Assembly (NCBI GenBank): GCA_037447605.1
Contig: CM074809.1
Coordinates: 293,628 to 357,627 of the forward strand
Length of the DNA stretch: 64,000 bases
Direction: 5' to 3'
Source: Zygnema circumcarinatum SAG 698-1b
Lineage: Eukaryota; Plantae; Zygnematophyceae
Positions 44,030-57,424 of the stretch are shown piece after piece. Position numbers and translations under genes: made by a program. The notes under the pieces are model-generated. The model saw only the letters and a program-made list of their open reading frames with translations, had not been told where the DNA came from and searched no databases. Positions within the stretch are counted from its first letter, which is position 1. Each line of letters opens with the position of its first letter.

Positions 44030-44530
44030 TACAGGCTATTCACGTTATAGTGATCGTGTTGGTCCCCAGACTCCCCACATATTTGTGTCACTATATCAGT
44101 AATGACCCGTTTGTCATTTTACATTTATAGTGATAATGTTATTACAGATGTGTTGCCCAGATGTATATCCGTACACCTTTGATCCCGTACATTGTACTTT
44201 TTGGGCAGTCGTCTCGTGGGTACAGTACTGTAGGTGTCTACGAACCCTAGTGAGCATGTGTACTGTACTGTCAAGTTGATATGCAGTGTACGATCAAGTC
44301 GATATCTGACGGTATGTTTCGATAATATGTACGGTCGTAATATATTTCTAATGTATATTCCGATACGTGGGTGGATAATATCGACAATTTGAATATATAG
44401 TAACAATTAGGGCTAAAAACCTAAAAACCCTAAAAACAACTGCAAAAAAATTACATCAAATGTTTGGCATACAAAGCAAAAACACAAAAACTTTAAATAA
44501 ATAAAAATAGAAGAATAAATAAACACTGCA

Positions 44531-44601
44531 AGTCAAAGAGGGCATTTGAACCCCTTTATTACTGTTTTGCAACAGTTGCGTAACCAATCCGCCACTTTGA
44601 C
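44531..44601 (-). ncRNA. tRNA-like cloverleaf (pseudo-tRNA / intronic tRNA-like structure), anticodon-like GCA
   Basis: Minus strand GTCAAAG TG GCGGATTGGTTACGC A ACTGTTGCAAAACAGT AATAA AGGGGTTCAAATGCCCT CTTTGAC T. Perfect 7-bp acceptor stem, A box TGGCGGATTGG, T loop TTCAAAT. The anticodon loop is 6 nt and position 61 is G rather than C. Confidence 0.75.
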
Positions 44602-44727
44602 TTAATGGGGAGGGGGAGGAATAACATACAGTCATACACACAACACAAGCATAAGCAAAGGAATGAGAGGCGCAAGCAAAGGCAAGGGCAACACAGCAAG
44701 GGAGGCAGGGGCGAGAGGAAAGGGAGG

Positions 44728-46120: not shown

Positions 46121-47780
46121 CAAATTCACGCTTCAGCGCATACGACAATTGTTGCCGGCCGGGAAACGGCTAGAGTTTGTAGGGTACGGAAATGTGCACA
46201 GTGTCAGTGTCTCAGCCTCTTCTCGTTACATCCGAGTCAGCAGGATCTGTTCCCTCCCCATTGATTGGCTGGAAAAGATTTGAGCTTTCAGAGCCTCGTC
46301 TTCGCACGTGTATTTATCGGGCAGCCCAATAGTCACTGACGTCACTATTTCGACTGTACGGTCAGCTCGTGCAAGACCGTTAGCCACGGCCAATGGCGAA
46401 TCCTATCAGTTTCTTTGGGCTGCTACGAAACGACAAATAATTAAATAAGGCGCCGTACAGTATCGCGATGTATCTCCGGATGCACTCGCCCTAGACCCCT
46501 ATGGTCAGGCAAATCGCCTTGTTCCTGGCACGTGGGAAAGTACACAAATAAAATACGTACACCGCAATGTGGGCAGTGGTGTTTGATAAGAGTACTTATT
46601 TTGAAAAACCAAACGATGTGGCATTCATTAATAGTCCGTCGCACCGAACAAAGAACCTTCCTTTTCTAAAGAAAATAAACTCAAATATCAAAACCAGTAC
46701 TCTGATCAAACATCAATTTCCCGGATATTAAGAACTAATTCTAGAAAACCTCAATGTCCTCATGGCCCCACTTGGCCCTTGTGGTGGCATGAGAACATGA
46801 GCAACAGAAAGTGTCCTACTAAGAACAAATTGAATGCCGATCTCTGGAGCTCTCCTCAACCGTCCGATCCTTCCACCGGTTGAATCTCAACCGTCCATTT
46901 CCTCCAGCGTGTCCGTACGCCCACCTCAACCCTAAAACCTTTCCTTCCGGCTCCATGGGCCCCTGTGGCCGTTCCGAGCAGTTTACCGTTCCAAGCCGTC
47001 AAACTGTCCTTGCTGTCAACGCCCGCACGTGACTCGGTGGAAAAAATCGGATTTTCGTTGACTCCGTCCAGCCTGGAAACGACAAACATCGCGACCGGCC
47101 CTTTGTCGCCTTTGGCCCGTACATACATGCCTACGTGGCATCATCTCCACCGTCCATATCGCGATCCGGCCCTTCCTCGAGATCCCGCCAAACCCAACCT
47201 TAAGCTGCCCGCATCCCTCCGGGCAGACTCAAAAACGTTTTTAAACCTGCCTGCCGCCAACAAAAATAAATTTCCCCGAACCCGAACAGTTGACCTGATC
47301 GTTACTTTCCAGAAAGCGCCAGATCTCCGTACATCCAAATCCTGTGTCGATGAGAAACGACAAGGTGTGCCGCCCGAGGACCGCGTCGAAGCTTCCAAGG
47401 GCGGGCAATGGGCCGTCTTTCCCCCCAGCTGGCGCCAATTTTGTCGCATTCGTCCGGCCGGACGCGCCGGGCGGCCAGGGGGGGCGAGCCAGCTGCGAGG
47501 CAGCGGCGAATGGAGGTCCGCCACGTGGAAAGGAGAGCTGACATGGCGAGCTGCTATTGCGGGAATGTCGGAGAGAGGCGGGCGGGCGGGGGCGGGGCGG
47601 GGGAGGGATAAAGGGGGAGGCGCCGGATAGGACAAGCGGCGCCGCCGAGGAAGGAGAGGGAGGGGAGAGAGGGAGGGAGAGGGAGAGGGAGAGGGAGGGG
47701 AGAGAGAGAGGGAGAGGGAGAGGAAGGGGAGAGAGAGAGAGGGAGAGGGAGAGGGAGAGAGAGGGAGAGGGGAAGGAGAG

Positions 47781-50700
47781 ATGGAGCAGCGCATGGGCAG
47801 GGTGTTTTTCTTGAGCCTGTTGGGGGTGCTGACGTGGACGCAGCTGGCGGAGGGGCGGACGCCAGGTGAGCTGACCTCCCTCTTTTCAATTCTCATTTTT
47901 TTTTTCATTTTGCGGCAGAGCAGAGCGTTTTCCTCTTCCTCTCTTTTTTTTTAATTTTTTTTGGTTCCATTTTGCAGGAGCGTTGCTGTCGTCATCAGTG
48001 ACGGAGGCAGCAGAGAGGCCGCCCCGCGCCCTGTCCTCCGTACTCGCTCTCCCCCCGTCCTCCCCTCTCTCTCTTCTTGTATTCTTTGCTCCACTCCCTC
48101 CCCCAGTCTCTCCTCTCTCTCTCTCTCCCTCCCTTTCCCTCTCTCCTCTTCTGTTCTTTCCTCACTCTCTCTCCCTCTCTTTCTCTCTTCCCGCCTTCCT
48201 CCCCTTCCTTCCCTGTCTTTCTCTCCCTCCCCCCTCTCTCTCTCGCTCCACTGTCTCCTCTCCCCTTCCCTCCTCACTCTCTCGCTCCCCTGTCTCTCTC
48301 TCTCTCTCTCCCCTGTTTCTCTCTCCCTCTCCCCCCTCTCTCTCTCGCTCCCCTCTCTTCCTCTCCCTCTCCGCCGCTAATGTCAGCTGTTTTGTCCTTT
48401 TCTCCGCAGACTCTGTCGGCAGACGAAGCTTTGGCCACTTCCTTGTCCGGTGAGTCACAAATGTTGGCCGCACACTCCCAACCTTTTTTGCCCCATTTTT
48501 TTTTTTTTTTAGCTTCATTGAATGAACCAGATGATCGCTGCCCCGAGCTATTCCAACTACGCATGTTGCCCAATCCTCGGGCTTTGATTTTTTTTTTTTT
48601 TTTTTTTGTTTTCTTTTTGGAGCAGACTCGGATTCCGAATGGGAGCGGAGAGCTCTCAAGGCGACCTCCGTCTCTTCTTTCTCAAATTCGTGGGCCAGCT
48701 GTACGCTCTAACCCCATTGGTCCTCCTCCTTGGAAAGAAAGAAAGGAAGCCGTACACGGCATGGCAAGATTGCTTCCTTCTTGCGCAATTTGTGTACTTC
48801 TTCTTTGTTCGATTGGGCATGAACCAACGGTTGGTTGCGTGGTCAATGGCAATGGCAGCCTCGAGCTGGCTGGACCCCGCGGAGGGCTCCTTCATAGTCA
48901 TGCCCTCCCTCTCGTACAACGTGTGGGCCCCCTCCACCGGCGAGACCGACCCCCCCGTCGAACTCAGCAACGGTACGCCCACTCCTCCGCTCCCAAGGCC
49001 TTTTACTATGTTCAAGTTTTGGGCCCTACTTCCTTCTTGCTGGTGGGGGAGTTGTTCATGTTGAACACAAAGTTGTTCATGTTGAACACCAAGTTGTTCA
49101 TGTTGTTGCGCGCGAGCAGATCCCAGCGGCGGCGTGTCGCTCAACGCGACGGGCGTGTGGACGCTGCAGAAGGTGCGCGCGTTCTACGCCTTCGTCGAAA
49201 TCCGGTCGGGGAAGTGCCTCGACGCGGTGACCCGCGCGATCGGCGGCCAAGTCGTGCTCTCAGGTTCGACCGCCCACTCCCACTGTCAACCATGCATGTA
49301 TGCATGCGCGCATGCATTTGTGCTGCATATGTCCCACTTTGTTCCGGTTTGTTGGTTTTAATTCGGGTGGATTCGGTGTGTTTTTGAGTTGTGTTCAGAG
49401 TGTACGGAAGGAGTGACCCAGCTCTGGTCGGCCATAAGCACGCAGGCCTCGGACCTGAGCGTGCAGTGGATGAACGTGGGGACGGGCCTCTGCCTCGACG
49501 CCATCGACGGCGCCGCCAGCTCGCCCCTCCTCCTCTGGACGTGCCGGCGAGGGGCGCACAGCCTCATGAACACCCAGCTGTGGCTGCCGCTGCCGCCCTC
49601 GGTTGCCACGAGGGAATCATGTGAGCCCCAACACAACACATTGTTCTGAGACCCCGAGCTTCTACTTCTTGGTTTTGTTGTTGCTAGACATGGAAGAACA
49701 TGAAATGTGGCTGTGGGTTGACTTGAATTGACGTGGGTTGACTCGGATTGGCTTGGGCAGCGGCATCGGGGCTCTCCCTGAACGCGTCCTCTAGCGCGCC
49801 CGACACGTACTTGAACGCGTTCTCGCGGCACGCGAGCTGGGCCGCCGCGGACCTGCCCGAGAGCGTGGACTGGCGGCCCCTGCTGGCGGGCGCCAAGGAC
49901 CAGTCCTCGTGCGGTGAGCGCGCGACCAACTGCATTTTGGCTCTCATGCTTCCCCTAGGAACAATGTCATGCCAATGTCGTGTTGGCGCGTCCCATGGTT
50001 CATGGCTCATGTCGGTCCACGCGCGTCCCGGCCCCTGCAGGGTCCTGCCACGTGTTCGCGGCGGTGGCGACCATCGAGGGCGCGTACAACATCCTGGCGG
50101 GCCCGCCCTCGCCCGCGTCCCTCTCGGAGCAGGCGGTGCTCGACTGCGGCCCGCGCGGCGCCTGCGCGGGCGGATGGCCGGCGGACGTCCTCTCCTGGCT
50201 GGCGGCCCGCCCCGCGGACGCCGGCCTGCCCGCCACGTCGGCGTACGGACCCTACGTCGGGCAGCCGCAGGCCTGCAAGGTAAACATTTCCACCTGCCAG
50301 TTTTGAGCCCTTGATTTTTTTTTTTTTCGCTGTTCCCCTTTACCAACCACGTGCTGCCACGTGTCGTTGACCAGTGGAGCGGTTGTTGTGTTCGATACGA
50401 CAAGCGGTTGGACATGGGCGGTCATAAAAGTTCCTTTGTCTTTTTTTCGGGTTGACTATGTCGCCGCCGGCCGGTTCGAATCCGTCAGGGCCGACCAAGC
50501 GGGCATTGTCGGCAGATGACGACAAAATTTTAGCTGGCAAAGCGCCACGCGACTATTCAGAAATGCTAGTCTGCCACGTCAGCGCTGCCGGCCGGCGTAA
50601 CGGCCGACAGGAAGGGTCGCCGGCCGGCCGGCTGAAGATTCCGGATCGCGCATTTATGAAACACAGGGCAACCGACATTCTCTGTTTTTTTGTCGTATGT

Positions 50701-51420
50701 CTTTTTGTCGTTAAGCTGGTTGATGTAACGGCAGTTTGGACAGGTCGGCGTCAACTGTTTGTCGGATACAGTACAGTACAATATATCCGACACGTGCGGA
50801 ATGTACAAACGGCAAGCCTCATGTTTCGGGCGGCTTACACGTGCGGTTAATCTAGAACTGTAACTGTGCGTGTGCAGGTTGGCATCCCGGGGGCCGTCCG
50901 CGTGGTACGGTTCGAGGAGGTTCCGGCGCTGAGCCCGCGCGCGCTGAGGGCGGCCGTGAGCCGGCAGCCGGTGCTGGCCTACGTCACGCTCACGGAGGAG
51001 CTGCAGCTCTGGAACTCGGTCAGCCTCAGCCTCGCATGGCCATGCATGGCATGGCATGGCGTGGCATGGCATGGCATGGCATGGCAATGGTTTGACACCA
51101 GTGTGATGCATGGCATGGCATGCGGCCCTGACCTCTGACCCATGGATGCATGGATGCATGGGTGCGTGCGCGCAGTGGGACATCTTCAAGGACTCGCAGA
51201 AGGCGTGCGGCGTGGGCGCCATGCTGACGCACGTGGTCGCCGTGGTGGGGTACGGAACGGAGGGCGGCACGGAGTACTGGATCGTGCGCAACTCCTTCGG
51301 GCGCTACTGGGGGGACTACGGCGCCGCGCGGGTCATGGCGGGCGTCTGCGGCCTCCAGGCGCTGCCCGCGCTCTACCCCGTCCTCGCCCGTCAGTGCCGA
51401 ACCCGTCTCCCTCTCTCTCC

Positions 51421-51454
<34 letters not shown>

Positions 51455-53660
51455 GTCACTCTCTCCCTCTCTCTCTTTCTCTGGGTTGAATTGGTCCTTT
51501 TCGGCTTTCCCCTTCTTTTTTTTCTCATTTTCGTTTTTATTTTTGTGTTGTGTCCAGCTCCGGACGGCAACCCCTGCGGAGCCATCAACCCGTGCGGCGC
51601 GGGCACGTGCATTCGCGGAGAATCGCTTTCATATAACTGCAGCTGCCCGCCCGGCTATCTGCCGGTCGTCAATACGGACGGCACGCAGACATGCGCGCCC
51701 GGTACTGCTTCTACCTTGACGAGCAAGAGGGGAAGAGATTGAGAGAGAGAGAGGGAGAGAGCGGGGGAGAGGGGGAGAGGGAAGGGAGAGGAGGAAGAAA
51801 ATGATAATCCAAAATGGAAACAAGAGGGCTTAATCCATGCACAAAAATGCAGATTGATAGCGCCTCCTCTTCCTGAATCTCTCTCCTCCTCCTCTTTTGG
51901 TTGTCTGGTTCCATGCTGTTGCAGAGGACGCGTGCGGAACGGCAACGGGAGCATGGAACCCCTGCGGCGCCGGCACGTGCGTGAACAGCGGCGACGCGCT
52001 GTACCACTGCGTGTGCTTTGCGGGCTACGCCGCCGCCCTCAACGCGCGGAGGCAGCAGATCTGCGTGCCGCGTGAGGACCCGCCCGCCTGCCTGCATGCA
52101 TGCCTTCCTGCATGTATGCATGTATGCATGCATTGTATGTATGCCTGCATGCCTGCCTGCCCTCCTGCATGTATGCATGTATGCATGCCTGCCTGCATGC
52201 CTGCATGTATCCATGCATGCCTGCATGCCTTCCTGCATGTATGCATGTATGCATGTATGCATGCATGCCTGCATGCCTGCCTGCATGTATGACTGCATGC
52301 CTGCATGCAGGCGCTCGGGGCAGAAAAGTTGCGGTCGCGTTTTTACGTGTTTCGATTGTTGCGCTTGTATGCCGCCGGTCGTGCGAAGGTGGAAAGGGAA
52401 AGGGGACGAGAGAAGAGGTCGACGTAAGGTGGAGGGAGGGAGGGAAAGGAAGAGAGAGCGATGGGATGGGGGAGGAGAGTACTGTGGAATTAACTTTTCT
52501 TTTATCTGTCTCCCCCTTTCCGTATTTCTTTTTGCAGCTGCCCAGACGGTTCAAGCTCTTGAAAGCTACACAGCGGAGGCAGGAGATGACTGTTATCTGA
52601 TTGCAGCCGCATATGGACTGACTGTTCAACAGCTCACAGATATGAATCCAAGAAGCGGGAGGGTGAGCAGACTCAGCCAAAGCATGCTGAAGTGTATATG
52701 GAACTTTTTTTCAAATGAAATACGTTCTATAATGGCATAACTTTCAATTGGAATACCTTTCTAGAGATTTGGATTGGACGATTTCTCGCTCTGGAAGTGA
52801 CGGTTGCTCATATTTTTGCAGGACGTGTGTTCTCCGTTACTTGTTGGGGATGTGTTGAATGTCACAAATGTGGAGCCTTATGACTGCAAAGTTTTGTACA
52901 GCATTCAGAAGGTAGGTCCCCCTCCCTCCCTCCCTCCCTCCCTCCCTCCCTCCCTCCCTCGTAAACTAAGTCTCCCTCTCTCTGTCTCCGTTTCTCACTC
53001 TCTCTCTCTCTCTTTCTCTCTTTCCTTGCAGAACGATTCGTGTTCCGGCATTGAGAGCAAGTTCAGCCTCCCCCCTTCTTCCCTCAGCGCAGTTCTGAAC
53101 CCTGCTGTCAACTGCTCCGGTGATTCGACCCTCACTCCGGGCCAACAGGTGAGCACCGAACATAGCTTGTTTAAAGAAAACTCATTGTGTTCTTTCCTTC
53201 GTTTGTAAACCTATCTCGTAGTCAAGCATAGTATTGGTTTGAACTGGCTGAAACTGAGCCCCCTAACGAGTGGACCTTTCCTTCCATCCTTTGCAGGTTT
53301 GCATTGTGAGTGGGCAGCCGGATGCGACAAAAGTATGTACGGCGAGTGACCGCGTTACATCATCTGATGTTGCGAGCGGAGGATGTGACCAAATGCTGCT
53401 CCGAAACACGCAGATCAACATCACCACCTTCTATGAAATGAACCGCGGAATCAACTGCCAAAATCTCTTTACAGGCCAGCAGGTGAGAGAGAGGGAGGGG
53501 TCGCATAAACAATAGTTATTGACATTTTTAACACTCGATAAGAACGGATAAGAAAATTCTACGAGCCTTCGGAGATGCGAATGTTTGAATCTTGAGAGTT
53601 TTCAGTGACTTTGAAACGCAAGGCCATCTCTTTGCAGAGAACTAACATCTGCCTTCCTTT

Positions 53661-53709
<49 letters not shown>

Positions 53710-54164
53710 CCCCCTCTCTCTCCCCCTCCCACTTCTTCTTCGCAGCTGTGTGTGGGATATCAGCAGCAGCCACCAGACACTTGTGCAACATATTATGTCT
53801 GGCAAACAGGCGATACATGCTACTCCGTTATCGCTCTGTTCTGTGGAACGAGGTCAAACAAAAGCTGGTGAGACTGCTTGAATACAAAACTTTGTATATG
53901 GACGGGAGGAATCTACAGAACATTGATGTGTTTGCATGCATGCATGCATGCATGTATGCTTGCATGATGGGTTGATTCATTCATTCATTCATTCATTCAG
54001 GTCTAATTATCTATGTTGGTTGGACGGAGGGGTGCAGGACCGAGTGTTTTCCCGGAAGCGAGGTTTGCGTCGGCACGGGCAGTGCATGGGCCGCCGGTAA
54101 AGCACTCTGTGTGGGGACATGCTTGAACTACCTCGGGGTGAGGGTGACCAACTGCTTTGGCTAA
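47781..54164 (+). CDS. Secreted mosaic protein: signal peptide - ricin B-type lectin - papain-like C1A protease - 2 EGF-like - 4 LysM; 18 exons, about 823 aa
   Basis: Exons 47781-47865, 47978-48039 (weak donor), 48410-48449, 48859-48972, 49120-49263, 49399-49620, 49761-49913, 50041-50279, 50878-51018, 51176-51389, 51558-51701, 51925-52071, 52538-52662, 52822-52911, 53032-53148, 53297-53482, 53746-53867, 54038-54164 total 2472 nt in frame. Ricin: SGKCLD..TQLW, TGLCLD..TQLW. C1A: LPESVDWR, KDQSSCGSC, SLSEQAVLDC, THVVAVVGYG, YWIVRNSFG. EGF: NPCGAGTC..C.C..GY..C twice. LysM: Y...GDDC..IA..YGL..QL..MNP-type units four times. Exons 2-3 and the 53867/54038 junction are less certain. Confidence 0.8.
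52085..52310. repeat. CATG/CCTG-rich degenerate microsatellite in a protease intron
   Basis: CATGCCTGCATGTATG-type repeats directly after the donor at 52072. Similar tracts at 15725-15840, 51040-51160 and 53935-53970. Confidence 0.8.
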
Positions 54165-55086
54165 GTTGGAGGTTCAGGTCCTGATAGAGAGGGGGGGAGA
54201 GGGAGGGAGTGAGGGAGGGAGAGAGAGAAGAGGTAAGGGAGGTAAGGAGGGAGACGGAGGAGGGAGAGGGTCGGGGGAGGTGGAGGAGGGTGAGGGTTAC
54301 GGGAGACGGGGGAGACGGAGGAGGGAGAGGAGTGAGGAGGGAGAGGGAGCAGGGAGAGGCCAGGGGTAGAGTGACGAGGGAGAGGGAGAGGAGAGGCTTG
54401 GAATGGAAGAAGAAATTGACTTAGGTAGTCAGCGTGGGCAGTAGCTTGGGCGTGCTCAAGAGGGGATCTGTATGCTTAGTAAGGTTGAATTATGGGAGAG
54501 GAGGGGGAAACCAAAGGGAGACGTTGGACTTCGAATTCCATCCAACAGCGTCGAAAGGCTTCCAACATTCAGTTCAGGTTCGGTCGATTTATTGGTTCTC
54601 AGTAGGAGAGAGAGCCTCTCTCGGGCTCTCAAATAGTGGGACACTCTTCAACATTCAAATTTATTGGGGTCGGAGCCATGGCTACCTATGGGAGAGGGAG
54701 GCAAGGCGGCTTCGATCTCGTACGGGGCATCCCATTCGCCCATTAAGGCGGAGAGAGAGAGGGAGAGGGAGAGAGAGGGGAGAGGGAGTGGGAGTGGGAG
54801 CGGGAGTGGGAGGGCATCCGTACAAGCTATAATCTCCCGTTGGTCATGGGAACAAAAATAAATTGACCTATTCTTTAATAGAGTAGTGGCTCCGGCAATT
54901 TCTTTATTCGTCAAATAGGGCATCATTAGGGATTACGATTAGGGATCATTTGTTCATAAGTAGGGGAACATTCAATTGTTTCATTAATTCTGTTTATATT
55001 TTACGGTTATATTTCAAACCATTTCCCATCCGCCTTCCTTCTTCAGTGTTCTTGTTCATGCATTGTTCTGCTCGTCCCGCCCCCCC

Positions 55087-55560
<474 letters not shown>

Positions 55561-57424
55561 CTTTCCCTACACCTTTGTCTTCTCTCGAAAGGAGAAAAAA
55601 AAAAAAAAGAATGACATTTAAGACTTGGACACCTATTCTCGTGGTGCGATCATACCTAGGCTGCTACGCCGGATCCCATCAGAACTCCGCTGCTAAGCGC
55701 CTGTGGGCCGGAATGTATTAATACACTGTATAATACATGCGTATTATACACCATTTTAAAAATACAGTGTATTTTATATGTATTTAACGTATTTTCTTTT
55801 GATTTCTCGCTAATTGAACGGAGATTGATTATTGGCCAACCAGCACCTCGACACGTGTGACGGGCCACACGTGTGACACGTGTGGCCGTACAGTTCCGTA
55901 CACAATTCTCGTACAGAAATTCCGTACGACTCTATGTCTGGTTGTACGGATGTTAAAAGTTGCGTTTGGGTTTTATACAGTGTAAAATACAGTATTAATA
56001 CTGTATTATACATTGTATTAAACCTCAAAGTGTATTCTATAGTGACCAATCATGTTGAACATTGTTCTTGACCTGTTCTTGGCTGACGTCACAATGTGAC
56101 GCCTTGGCGGACTGCTTGTCTCGGCAAGCCGGTCCGAAACAGCAATTGCCAAATGGTTGGAACCATCGCCGCCCGACCGACACAAGCATTGCCATCGGAC
56201 CGAAACAACCATTGCCTACTGTTGCAACCATTGGCAATGGTTTTCAATGTTGCCAACCATTGCCGCCCGCCGGCCCTCTACAGTACATCAGCTTCAGCTT
56301 CAGTTCAGGGTACAGCACTCTGATAGTGTGAACTCATCCACGTGAGCCAATCACAGCCCGCCACCTCAGCACAACTGCTCCAAGTGGCGAGCACTCTCAT
56401 TGGTCCACACAACCTCCAATATCTAATTACGAGTGATTTTTTGCATCTCGGCCTTCACTGGGTCCCTCGGCTCTTTGAAATTACAAGATGGACTTCACGT
56501 GAGGGGGTCCTCGTCTCATGGTCCAACGGCGTGCAACTGGTTGAACGAATGCTGCTGATGTGTTTCAACTTTGCTGATGTAATTTCGCAATTAGCGAAGG
56601 GACGTTGAATAATGAACAATGAATAATTGGAAGAAACGCAGCCGCAATTCTCAAAATTTGAGTCGAACAAATTCGGTACAAAATCGCAATTCCTTTTGAC
56701 TCAGCAAAACTGAACAATTGAACATACATAAACGTGTCCGCAGTCGTCAGGTTCATTCTATTTTTTGGAACGTGAAAAATGACTACAAGAATACCTTACC
56801 AGCATACGAAAAATACTTGATCTACGAAAAAAAGAAAAGAACCAGCTACTGACAATTCAAATTCGGTATATACTCTTGTCAACGGAGATTTTCTTAGCCG
56901 AATTTCGACATCGTAACTGGTTGTTCAATGCTTGATAACCCTTAAAGAAAATAGGGGGAGTCAGAGTTAACACATGGCCAAATCAACTTCGTAAGCGTGT
57001 CGGGCGAATTAAGCATTGGTAGGTACGCATTTCGGTACTGGGTTCGGCGGAGCCGCAGATCCCGACCCAGAATTCGTACACGAAACTTTGACTTTTAGTA
57101 TACTAAATTCTTAGTACGCTCCGGGCTAAGTCTGACCCCCCCCTAATGCAAGGAACAGTGGTGAAGTTTTTGAAGGGGAGGAAAAACGAAGGGTGCTGAA
57201 ACCACTCCGAATAGACAAAAGACTTTCTTTTACACCTCCCAGGAGGTAAACAAAAGCACAAACATGGAAAAAAGTTACCCATCACTAACAGCCTTACTTT
57301 CCTTCATGCGACTCAAAAAAATCAACAACGTAGACACTCCCGCTTCTGCCTCACACATTACCCGACAACCTCCAGTGGAAAAAAAGACCTAGTCGTGATT
57401 TTCGCCAAGAATACTCGCAACTCT

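Follow-up and report, generated by a model that had tools for sequence, protein, structure and literature searches.

A spliced Zygnema gene for a predicted secreted papain-type protease with a ricin-type lectin head, EGF modules and LysM modules

We analyzed a 64,000-nucleotide (nt) stretch of DNA from the alga Zygnema circumcarinatum SAG 698-1b (GenBank assembly GCA_037447605.1, contig CM074809.1, positions 293,628 to 357,627 of the forward strand), hereafter the window, in which positions are counted from the first letter. The subject of this report is the interval 47781-54164 on the plus strand, which we found to be one spliced gene of 19 exons with GT..AG at every intron border. Joined together, the exons form an uninterrupted frame of 2547 nt, or 848 codons, as judged by three-frame translation and the GT..AG borders; the frame opens with an ATG at 47781 and closes with a TAA at 54162-54164. 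The predicted product is a mosaic of a signal peptide, a ricin-type beta-trefoil, a C1A (papain-type) protease domain, two modules of the epidermal growth factor (EGF) type and four LysM-like modules. This architecture had been proposed in an initial annotation, made from the sequence alone, and is borne out by the searches described below. The exons, and the parts that they are predicted to encode, are as follows.

47781-47865, plus strand: exon 1, start codon and putative signal peptide (charged MEQRMGR, hydrophobic core, A-x-G site)
47978-48039, 48410-48449 and 48626-48700, plus strand: exons 2, 3 and 4, Ser/Ala-rich acidic low-complexity leader
48859-48972, 49120-49263 and 49399-49620, plus strand: exons 5, 6 and 7, ricin-type (R-type/CBM13) beta-trefoil
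49761-49913, plus strand: exon 8, linker between lectin and protease, mature N-terminus LPESVDWR, oxyanion-hole Gln
50041-50279, plus strand: exon 9, N-terminal lobe of Peptidase_C1 with the nucleophile Cys
50878-51018, plus strand: exon 10, middle part of the Peptidase_C1 domain
51176-51389, plus strand: exon 11, C-terminal lobe of Peptidase_C1 with His and Asn
51558-51701, plus strand: exon 12, EGF-like module 1, six Cys
51925-52071, plus strand: exon 13, EGF-like module 2, six Cys
52538-52662, 52822-52911, 53032-53148 and 53297-53482, plus strand: exons 14, 15, 16 and 17, LysM-like modules 1-3, each Cys-flanked
53746-53867 and 54038-54164, plus strand: exons 18 and 19, LysM-like module 4 (second half remodelled) and Cys-rich tail, ending RVTNCFG

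One spliced gene and one transcript

The initial annotation had placed the start and stop codons at these same positions and had described the exons as in phase, both of which agree with the open frame; its count of 18 exons, however, falls short of the 19 found here, the discrepancy lying in the short leader exons. At the 3' end, the acceptor 54037|54038 is the sole AG that keeps the frame, and a last exon beginning at 54001 (AG at 53999-54000) was ruled out by a premature stop. The tail encoded from 54038 is 57% identical to that of the relative P0051 and has the same ...RVTNCFG terminus. P0051 and the other ricin-headed relatives compared below (P0001, P0004 and P0161) are all transcriptome contigs from SRR8128902-08, that is, from one organism. 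Exons 4 to 8 are symmetric exons of phase 1-1, as are exons 12 and 13, each of which holds one EGF module, just as had been claimed; the introns within the LysM modules of exons 14-17 are in phase 0. A self-tblastn search of the window with the 848-residue model found no paralogue within it. The gene is bordered by microsatellites, which also occupy introns 2 and 13 (47653-47780, 48107-48372, 52086-52309 and 54190-54396): they are purine- or pyrimidine-rich or of the (TGCA)n type, and a (GGAGAG)n run adjoins the start codon.

Transcript evidence was drawn from contigs of four public runs (X1, X2, X3 and X5), which were placed on 47781-53780. Six public runs contain about a quarter of the sampled words of this stretch, a share that fits exon-only content, because exons make up 40% of it. 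We found that the contigs skip 12 of the 18 introns, with joints that fall on the GT..AG borders or are offset by a few variant bases; since they are spliced, they derive from RNA, the labelling of the runs as RNA being itself a guess. X5 contig 11 (1310 nt) begins in the signal-peptide exon and reaches exon 10; X3 contig 7 (1852 nt) extends from exon 5 as far as about exon 16, and X1 contig 3 (1402 nt) from exon 11 past exon 17 into exon 18. This last contig has zero differences from the window on the listed exons 11, 12, 13 and 17; its contiguous pieces give the 11/12 junction, and at 53482 its loose end continues with the first bases of exon 18, which accounts for two further introns. Contigs of X1, X2 and X5 link exons 1 and 2, the leader joints in X1 are 47865>47978, 48039>48410 and 48700>48859, and exon 10 has RNA-contig joints on either side. 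The 18/19 junction, which lies beyond the stretch covered, rests on frame and homology. Overlapping spliced contigs therefore bridge all domain borders, and the lectin, protease, EGF and LysM parts are one expressed transcript: the contigs tile exon 1 into exon 18, rather than falling into the separate transcripts that the initial annotation had considered.

These data also bear on whether the gene is an artefact, either a merger of neighboring genes or a pseudogene. The leader exons 2-4, which are of low complexity, poorly conserved and variable in their borders between transcripts, are what such a reading can draw upon. It is refuted by the bridged domain borders, by the open frame and by the collinearity of exons 5-19 in relatives, and we give it practically no credence.

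The transcripts are not uniform. In X2 the leader is spliced otherwise: exon 2 extends to 48078 and exon 3 gives 25 bases, for a net gain of 24 nt in frame. In three runs the contigs depart from the window sequence in clusters of sites, chiefly in the lectin exons 6-7 and also at the borders of leader exons 2-3, and all listed transcript variants are in frame. The clusters lie at 49199-49206, 49541-49570 and 49603-49620 and comprise the changes I>M, R>Q, S>A, H>K and N>S; the final 18 bases of exon 7 give way to other sequence in the RNA contigs. The exon-7 differences occur in all four runs and the exon-6 cluster in X2, X3 and X5, with 0-4 differences in most other exons. Such clusters may reflect an allele, a strain difference, a near-identical copy or gene conversion. 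In addition, contigs in three runs match only 50950-50972 and 51358-51389 and then continue in unlike sequence, with a joint 50972>51358 that lacks GT..AG; these contigs probably come from an expressed paralogue. Finally, one run has a contig of low depth (219 nt, depth 3) at 50307-50524 within intron 9, the longest of the introns (598 nt); it may be unspliced precursor or a small separate transcript.

Modules of the predicted protein

The N-terminus encoded by exon 1 reads, from hydropathy, as a putative signal peptide: a charged start is followed by a 12-residue hydrophobic core, with a peak of 2.7 across residues 8-19, and by an A-x-G site. The C-terminal tail is without a hydrophobic anchor, and the protein is predicted to be of the secreted type. 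The Pfam searches of the window gene were run exon by exon. Leader exons 2 and 4 matched no Pfam family at E<=10 (exon 3, with 13 residues, is too short to scan), and no counterpart of leader exons 2-4 was found in the relatives compared.

Several lines of comparison point to a ricin-type, or carbohydrate-binding module family 13 (CBM13), beta-trefoil in exons 5-7. Exon 7 matched Ricin_B_lectin with E 0.0045 and 17.6 bits, below the Pfam cut-off of 29 bits. A lectin profile (A3) that combines the three lectin exons of the window with four relatives matched the CBM13 of a xylanase (1knl) at E 5.5e-8, and also the CBM13 of an alpha-galactosidase, CEL-III and the abrin B chain. P0001 shares 47% identity with exon 6 and 54% with exon 7, and its own trefoil passes the Pfam ricin threshold (43 bits, E 5.6e-11). 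The CLD...QxW pattern is kept in trefoil lobes 2 and 3. In an AlphaFold2 (AF2) model of P0004 (45-460), lobes 2-3 are beta-rich, with a predicted local distance difference test score (pLDDT) of about 80, and lobe 1 stays below 50.

The protease domain was recognized directly. Peptidase_C1 (PF00112; cut-off 20.7) was matched by exon 9 with 42.8 bits (E 8.2e-11) and by exon 11 with 48.6 bits (E 1.4e-12), and exon 10, between them, is 52% identical to P0004 342-383. Sequence matches of the domain in the PDB were ananain, actinidin and ficin, with Cys, His and Asn aligned; exon 9 aligns to ananain residues 24-95 and exon 11 to actinidin 156-216. The catalytic codons are intact (Gln 49901-49903, Cys 50046-50048, His 51230-51232, Asn 51290-51292), so that the complete set reported at the outset is confirmed by occupied positions in the ananain and actinidin alignments. 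We also found the two substitutions that had been pointed out beside these residues, C-H instead of C-W after the nucleophile and N-S-F instead of N-S-W. Six disulfide Cys, which form the three pairs of the papain fold, are present in the window protein and its relatives in a MAFFT alignment, and AF2 models of relatives give the C1 fold a pLDDT above 90 and match plant papain-like enzymes. Together, these results indicate a cathepsin-L-like C1A (papain) domain with the full Gln-Cys-His-Asn set, which is predicted to be catalytically complete.

In the C-terminal half, exons 12 and 13, with six Cys each, scored 24.1 and 23.3 bits against EGF (PF00008; cut-off 21.5). Against LysM (PF01476; cut-off 20.9), exon 14, which is module 1, scored 27.9 bits (E 2.2e-6), and exon 17, which is module 3, scored 16.7 bits (E 0.007), below the cut-off; modules 2 and 4 are split by introns, and exon-by-exon scoring covers modules 1 and 3. 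Identity to P0051 583-664 is 54% for exon 18 and 57% for exon 19. An AF2 model of P0051 (315-664), aligned with the window exons, shows the EGF modules as two hairpin pairs, together with four beta-alpha-alpha-beta units, of which the last has lower confidence. When this C-terminal half of P0051 was compared by Foldseek, the top match was Ecp6 (4b8v; 2.5e-6), followed by a bacterial NlpC/P60 LysM pair, CEBiP and SleL. The root-mean-square deviations of these matches are high, which points to a different packing of the modules or to an uncertain model.

Relatives and the missing propeptide

The window's own protein was absent from the databases searched, among them in a full HMMER scan with exon 9; the best match was 57% identical, and an ESM Atlas look-up of P0004 gave no usable match. 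Collinear relatives were found: they are 40-65% identical across exons 5-19, with each exon matching in order. These comparisons argue for a family with a collinear C1-EGF2-LysM4 core, seen here only in Zygnematophyceae (Mesotaenium and Closterium) and in the transcriptome SRR8128902-08. By sequence, then, the gene is a member of a multi-gene zygnematophycean family and not a one-off, a point that the initial annotation had missed.

The heads placed on this core differ. They are ricin, hevein-like plus ricin, leucine-rich repeat (LRR) or legume lectin. P0004 (812 aa) combines a hevein-like module, which matches Chitin_bind_1 at E 1e-4 (below threshold), with a ricin-like module, C1, EGF2, LysM4 and the same tail. 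A second group carries LRR or legume lectin on the same core and comes from Closterium spp. and Mesotaenium endlicherianum; it includes CAI5502628.1, CAI5959345.1 and CAI5498511.1 from Closterium sp., and ME000065S09001/09004, ME000109S_10915 and ME000245S03966 from M. endlicherianum. Like the window gene, these proteins have the linker motif described below, an I29-less C1A domain, two EGF modules and three to four Cys-flanked LysM modules; unlike it, they have LRR or legume-lectin heads, retain C-W and N-S-W, and form a sister clade. Because the module borders lie on phase-1 introns and varied heads sit on the same core, the arrangement fits exon shuffling, which had been proposed from the window alone and now gains support from the interchangeable heads of the relatives. 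One Closterium entry, P0002 (Closterium sp. Naga37s-1, CAI5502628.1, 1898 aa), contains two complete LRR-C1-EGF(-LysM) units in tandem; the annotation has probably fused two neighboring genes of the family here, which would imply tandem duplication.

A quick maximum-likelihood tree was made from 116 C1 domains, with the window gene represented by its C1 part. The family forms a clade (Shimodaira-Hasegawa-like approximate likelihood ratio test, SH-aLRT, 96), as do the ricin-headed members together with the window gene (SH-aLRT 99) and the members with LRR or legume-lectin heads (99). The family itself falls inside a weakly supported group (SH-aLRT 81) of 33 eukaryotic enzymes, several of them shown to bear I29, such as oryzain. 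With exon 9 alone as query, several top matches were propeptide-less proteins. A bacterial origin of the I29-less C1 domain was rejected: the next-best relatives of the whole domain bear I29, and the tree sets the family beside oryzain-type enzymes.

Three M. endlicherianum relatives have lost the nucleophile Cys, which is Ser in P0151 and P0152 (CGASW) and Gly in P0154, with His, Asn and the EGF-LysM part kept. To judge from their sequences, they would be either pseudo-proteases or Ser-nucleophile variants; Ser-nucleophile variants of papain-like proteins are known from silicatein and SERA. The three proteins keep the whole architecture despite the changed nucleophile, and the ricin-headed clade has both conserved Trp beside the catalytic residues replaced. 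Both facts would suit a protease domain that is mainly a scaffold, the secreted protein acting as a multivalent glycan receptor, an adhesin or a decoy whose proteolysis is weak or absent. However, the window gene and all four ricin-headed relatives keep Gln and Cys, and the four ricin-headed members that reach that far keep His, Asn and the six disulfide Cys; this retention of catalytic and disulfide residues in the ricin-headed clade argues for selection on catalysis, and we consider the scaffold reading improbable.

The initial annotation had recognized no I29 (ERFNIN) propeptide, and we likewise found none. I29 (PF08246) had no match in exons 2 and 4 at E<=10, in exon 8 at E<=1, or in the linkers of five relatives at E<=10. 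When a profile of the linker was compared by hhalign with I29-bearing pro-enzymes, the mature N-terminus alone aligned. Nor does the region 48000-48850, where an overlooked I29 exon had been considered, contain one: the RNA shows only short leader exons there. I29 was probably lost, as the closest outside relatives of the family carry it.

What lies in front of the protease is a linker, which in the window protein separates it from the lectin by about 45 residues. This linker, in exon 8, contains the motif LNAFSRHAS (49811-49837), which conforms to [YF][LF]N.F.R[HY]AS, a motif that is found 5-25 residues before the mature N-terminus and is common to ricin-, LRR- and legume-lectin-headed relatives (alignment A5). 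The motif could be a processing site or a short pro-segment. Its resemblance to the GxNxFxD end suggested an I29 remnant, an idea that is unsupported, as there is no Pfam I29 match and hhalign aligns the mature N-terminus only.

We considered whether the lectin and linker stand in for I29 and keep the active site blocked until glycan binding or cleavage of the head frees it, as the initial annotation had suggested of the lectin. The absence of I29 is in keeping with such autoinhibition, and the conservation of the motif across differing heads indicates that the segment matters. However, in the AF2 model of P0004 (45-460) the 35-residue linker has a pLDDT below 50 and does not dock with confidence; a disordered linker gives no indication of a docked inhibitor. 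Moreover, the profile-profile comparison aligned just the mature N-terminus with the I29 pro-enzymes, and the LRR-headed relatives keep the motif without a lectin, so that any inhibitor would be the linker and not the lectin. A predicted complex of lectin and linker with the protease scored 0.00, which is evidence neither way. The proposed role for the lectin is thus unsupported, and autoinhibition by the head as a whole seems to us unlikely.

Candidate functions and comparison with known systems

Taken together with the transcript, these comparisons lead us to propose, with moderate confidence, that the gene encodes a secreted, glycan-tethered C1A protease, a ricin-headed member of the C1-EGF2-LysM4 family, that is most likely aimed at microbial surfaces. 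After secretion, the LysM array and the trefoil would hold the protease on a glycan surface, the EGF pair would serve as a stiff spacer, and proteolysis would be concentrated on proteins embedded in that surface. The ligands of known LysM proteins are polymers of N-acetylglucosamine (GlcNAc), namely chitin and peptidoglycan, and those of known R-type lectins and CBM13 modules are galactose (Gal) or N-acetylgalactosamine (GalNAc), or xylan-type glycans. The likeliest targets would be the surfaces of microbes that live on or attack the alga, for example chitin-walled parasites or bacteria; microbial targets are thought most likely because the heads swap among extracellular recognition modules (ricin, hevein-like, LRR and legume lectin).

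Several observations weigh against this proposal. The window protein has other residues in place of two Trp, the one that follows the nucleophile and that of N-S-W, and some Mesotaenium relatives lack the nucleophile Cys, so that not all members of the family depend on proteolysis. As a rule, C1A enzymes require their propeptide for folding and latency, and no substitute for it was found here. On the binding side, trefoil lobe 1 is degenerate, and is poorly modelled in P0004; module 1 is the sole LysM module of the gene above the Pfam threshold, modules 3 and 4 having diverged. Lastly, the structure models are those of the relatives P0004 and P0051, not of the window protein.

The same protein may be aimed at the alga itself, tethered by its lectin modules to the alga's own glycoproteins and remodelling wall or matrix in growth, division, wounding or conjugation. 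For this possible, if less than likely, role there is a precedent in Volvox, where VcPap-11, the subject of the only physiological report on an algal C1A protease that we found, is induced by sex pheromone and is not assignable to the cathepsin B, F, H or L groups (PMC2474614). In addition, the window transcript occurs in runs of three studies, with no sign that infection is needed. Against a self-directed role, LRR and hevein-like heads are more typical of non-self recognition, and GlcNAc polymers, the known ligands of LysM, are not known as established wall components of these algae.

Among chlorophytes, VcPap-11 is reportedly also wound-induced and is said to carry chitin-binding repeats, according to work of Amon and colleagues from 1998. 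For Chlamydomonas, an architecture of peptidase_C1 with LysM was listed in 2009 (PMC2728734). These chlorophyte proteins resemble the window gene in joining a green-algal C1A domain to LysM or chitin-binding repeats, and differ in that no EGF, ricin or LRR part is reported for them, a comparison that rests on their description in the literature. The chlorophyte and streptophyte fusions of C1 and LysM may be independent.

The nearest solved and sequence relatives of the catalytic domain are papain-like proteases of land plants (RD21, Rcr3/Pip1, oryzain, ananain and actinidin). Identity is 30-34%, with TM-scores of 0.8-0.88 to the target, and the catalytic residues and disulfides are shared; in contrast, they have an I29 propeptide and sometimes a granulin tail, and no lectin, EGF or LysM part. 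Secreted papain-like proteases of land plants act in the apoplast in immunity.

For the LysM array, the likenesses lie elsewhere. The C-terminal half of P0051 finds its best structural matches in the LysM arrays of chitin receptors and of effectors: Ecp6 (4b8v), OsCEBiP (5jce) and the ectodomains of CERK1 and NFP likewise have several Cys-linked LysM modules, but come without an enzyme. Bacterial LysM-NlpC/P60 endopeptidases such as that of T. thermophilus (4uz2/4xcm), whose LysM pair is the second-best structural match to P0051, do use LysM to tether a papain-fold cysteine peptidase to a GlcNAc polymer. Unlike the window protein, they are prokaryotic enzymes of family C40, not C1A, cut the stem peptides of peptidoglycan, and have no EGF modules or lectin head.

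We found no literature on a C1-EGF-LysM architecture in streptophyte algae. The combination of C1A with LysM was already known in algae; what is new is such a protease from a streptophyte alga in which EGF spacers and a ricin head are present and I29 is missing. The present analysis adds RNA proof that the ricin head is attached, a family tree and the negative propeptide tests.

The Zygnematophyceae are the sister group of land plants, and their extracellular recognition proteins bear on the origins of plant immunity and wall sensing. LysM, LRR or lectin, and EGF are building blocks of plant receptor ectodomains, found here on a protease rather than on a kinase; EGF modules, for instance, occur in the wall-associated kinases of land plants. 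If the proposed glycan-guided model is true, the protein would be a testable enzyme aimed by carbohydrate-binding modules at both ends, and a natural cathepsin-L-like enzyme that folds and is controlled without I29. A more far-reaching idea, which we regard as rather doubtful, is that the family carries out a direct-acting surveillance, an early or alternative form of plant pattern recognition: recognition modules of the kinds that land plants carry on immune receptors (LRR, LysM, lectins and EGF) would be fused to an effector protease in a single secreted chain, with heads shuffled on phase-1 introns so as to vary the targets and the short conserved linker replacing I29. Such a protein would combine sensing and attack in one molecule.

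Two RNA-like elements flank the gene in the window. A 5S rRNA match over the full model length lies at 55642-55754 on the plus strand (45.8 bits against a gathering score of 38), about 1.5 kb downstream of the protease gene. On the minus strand, at 44530-44602, ARAGORN identified a tRNA-like element, read with a four-base anticodon loop.

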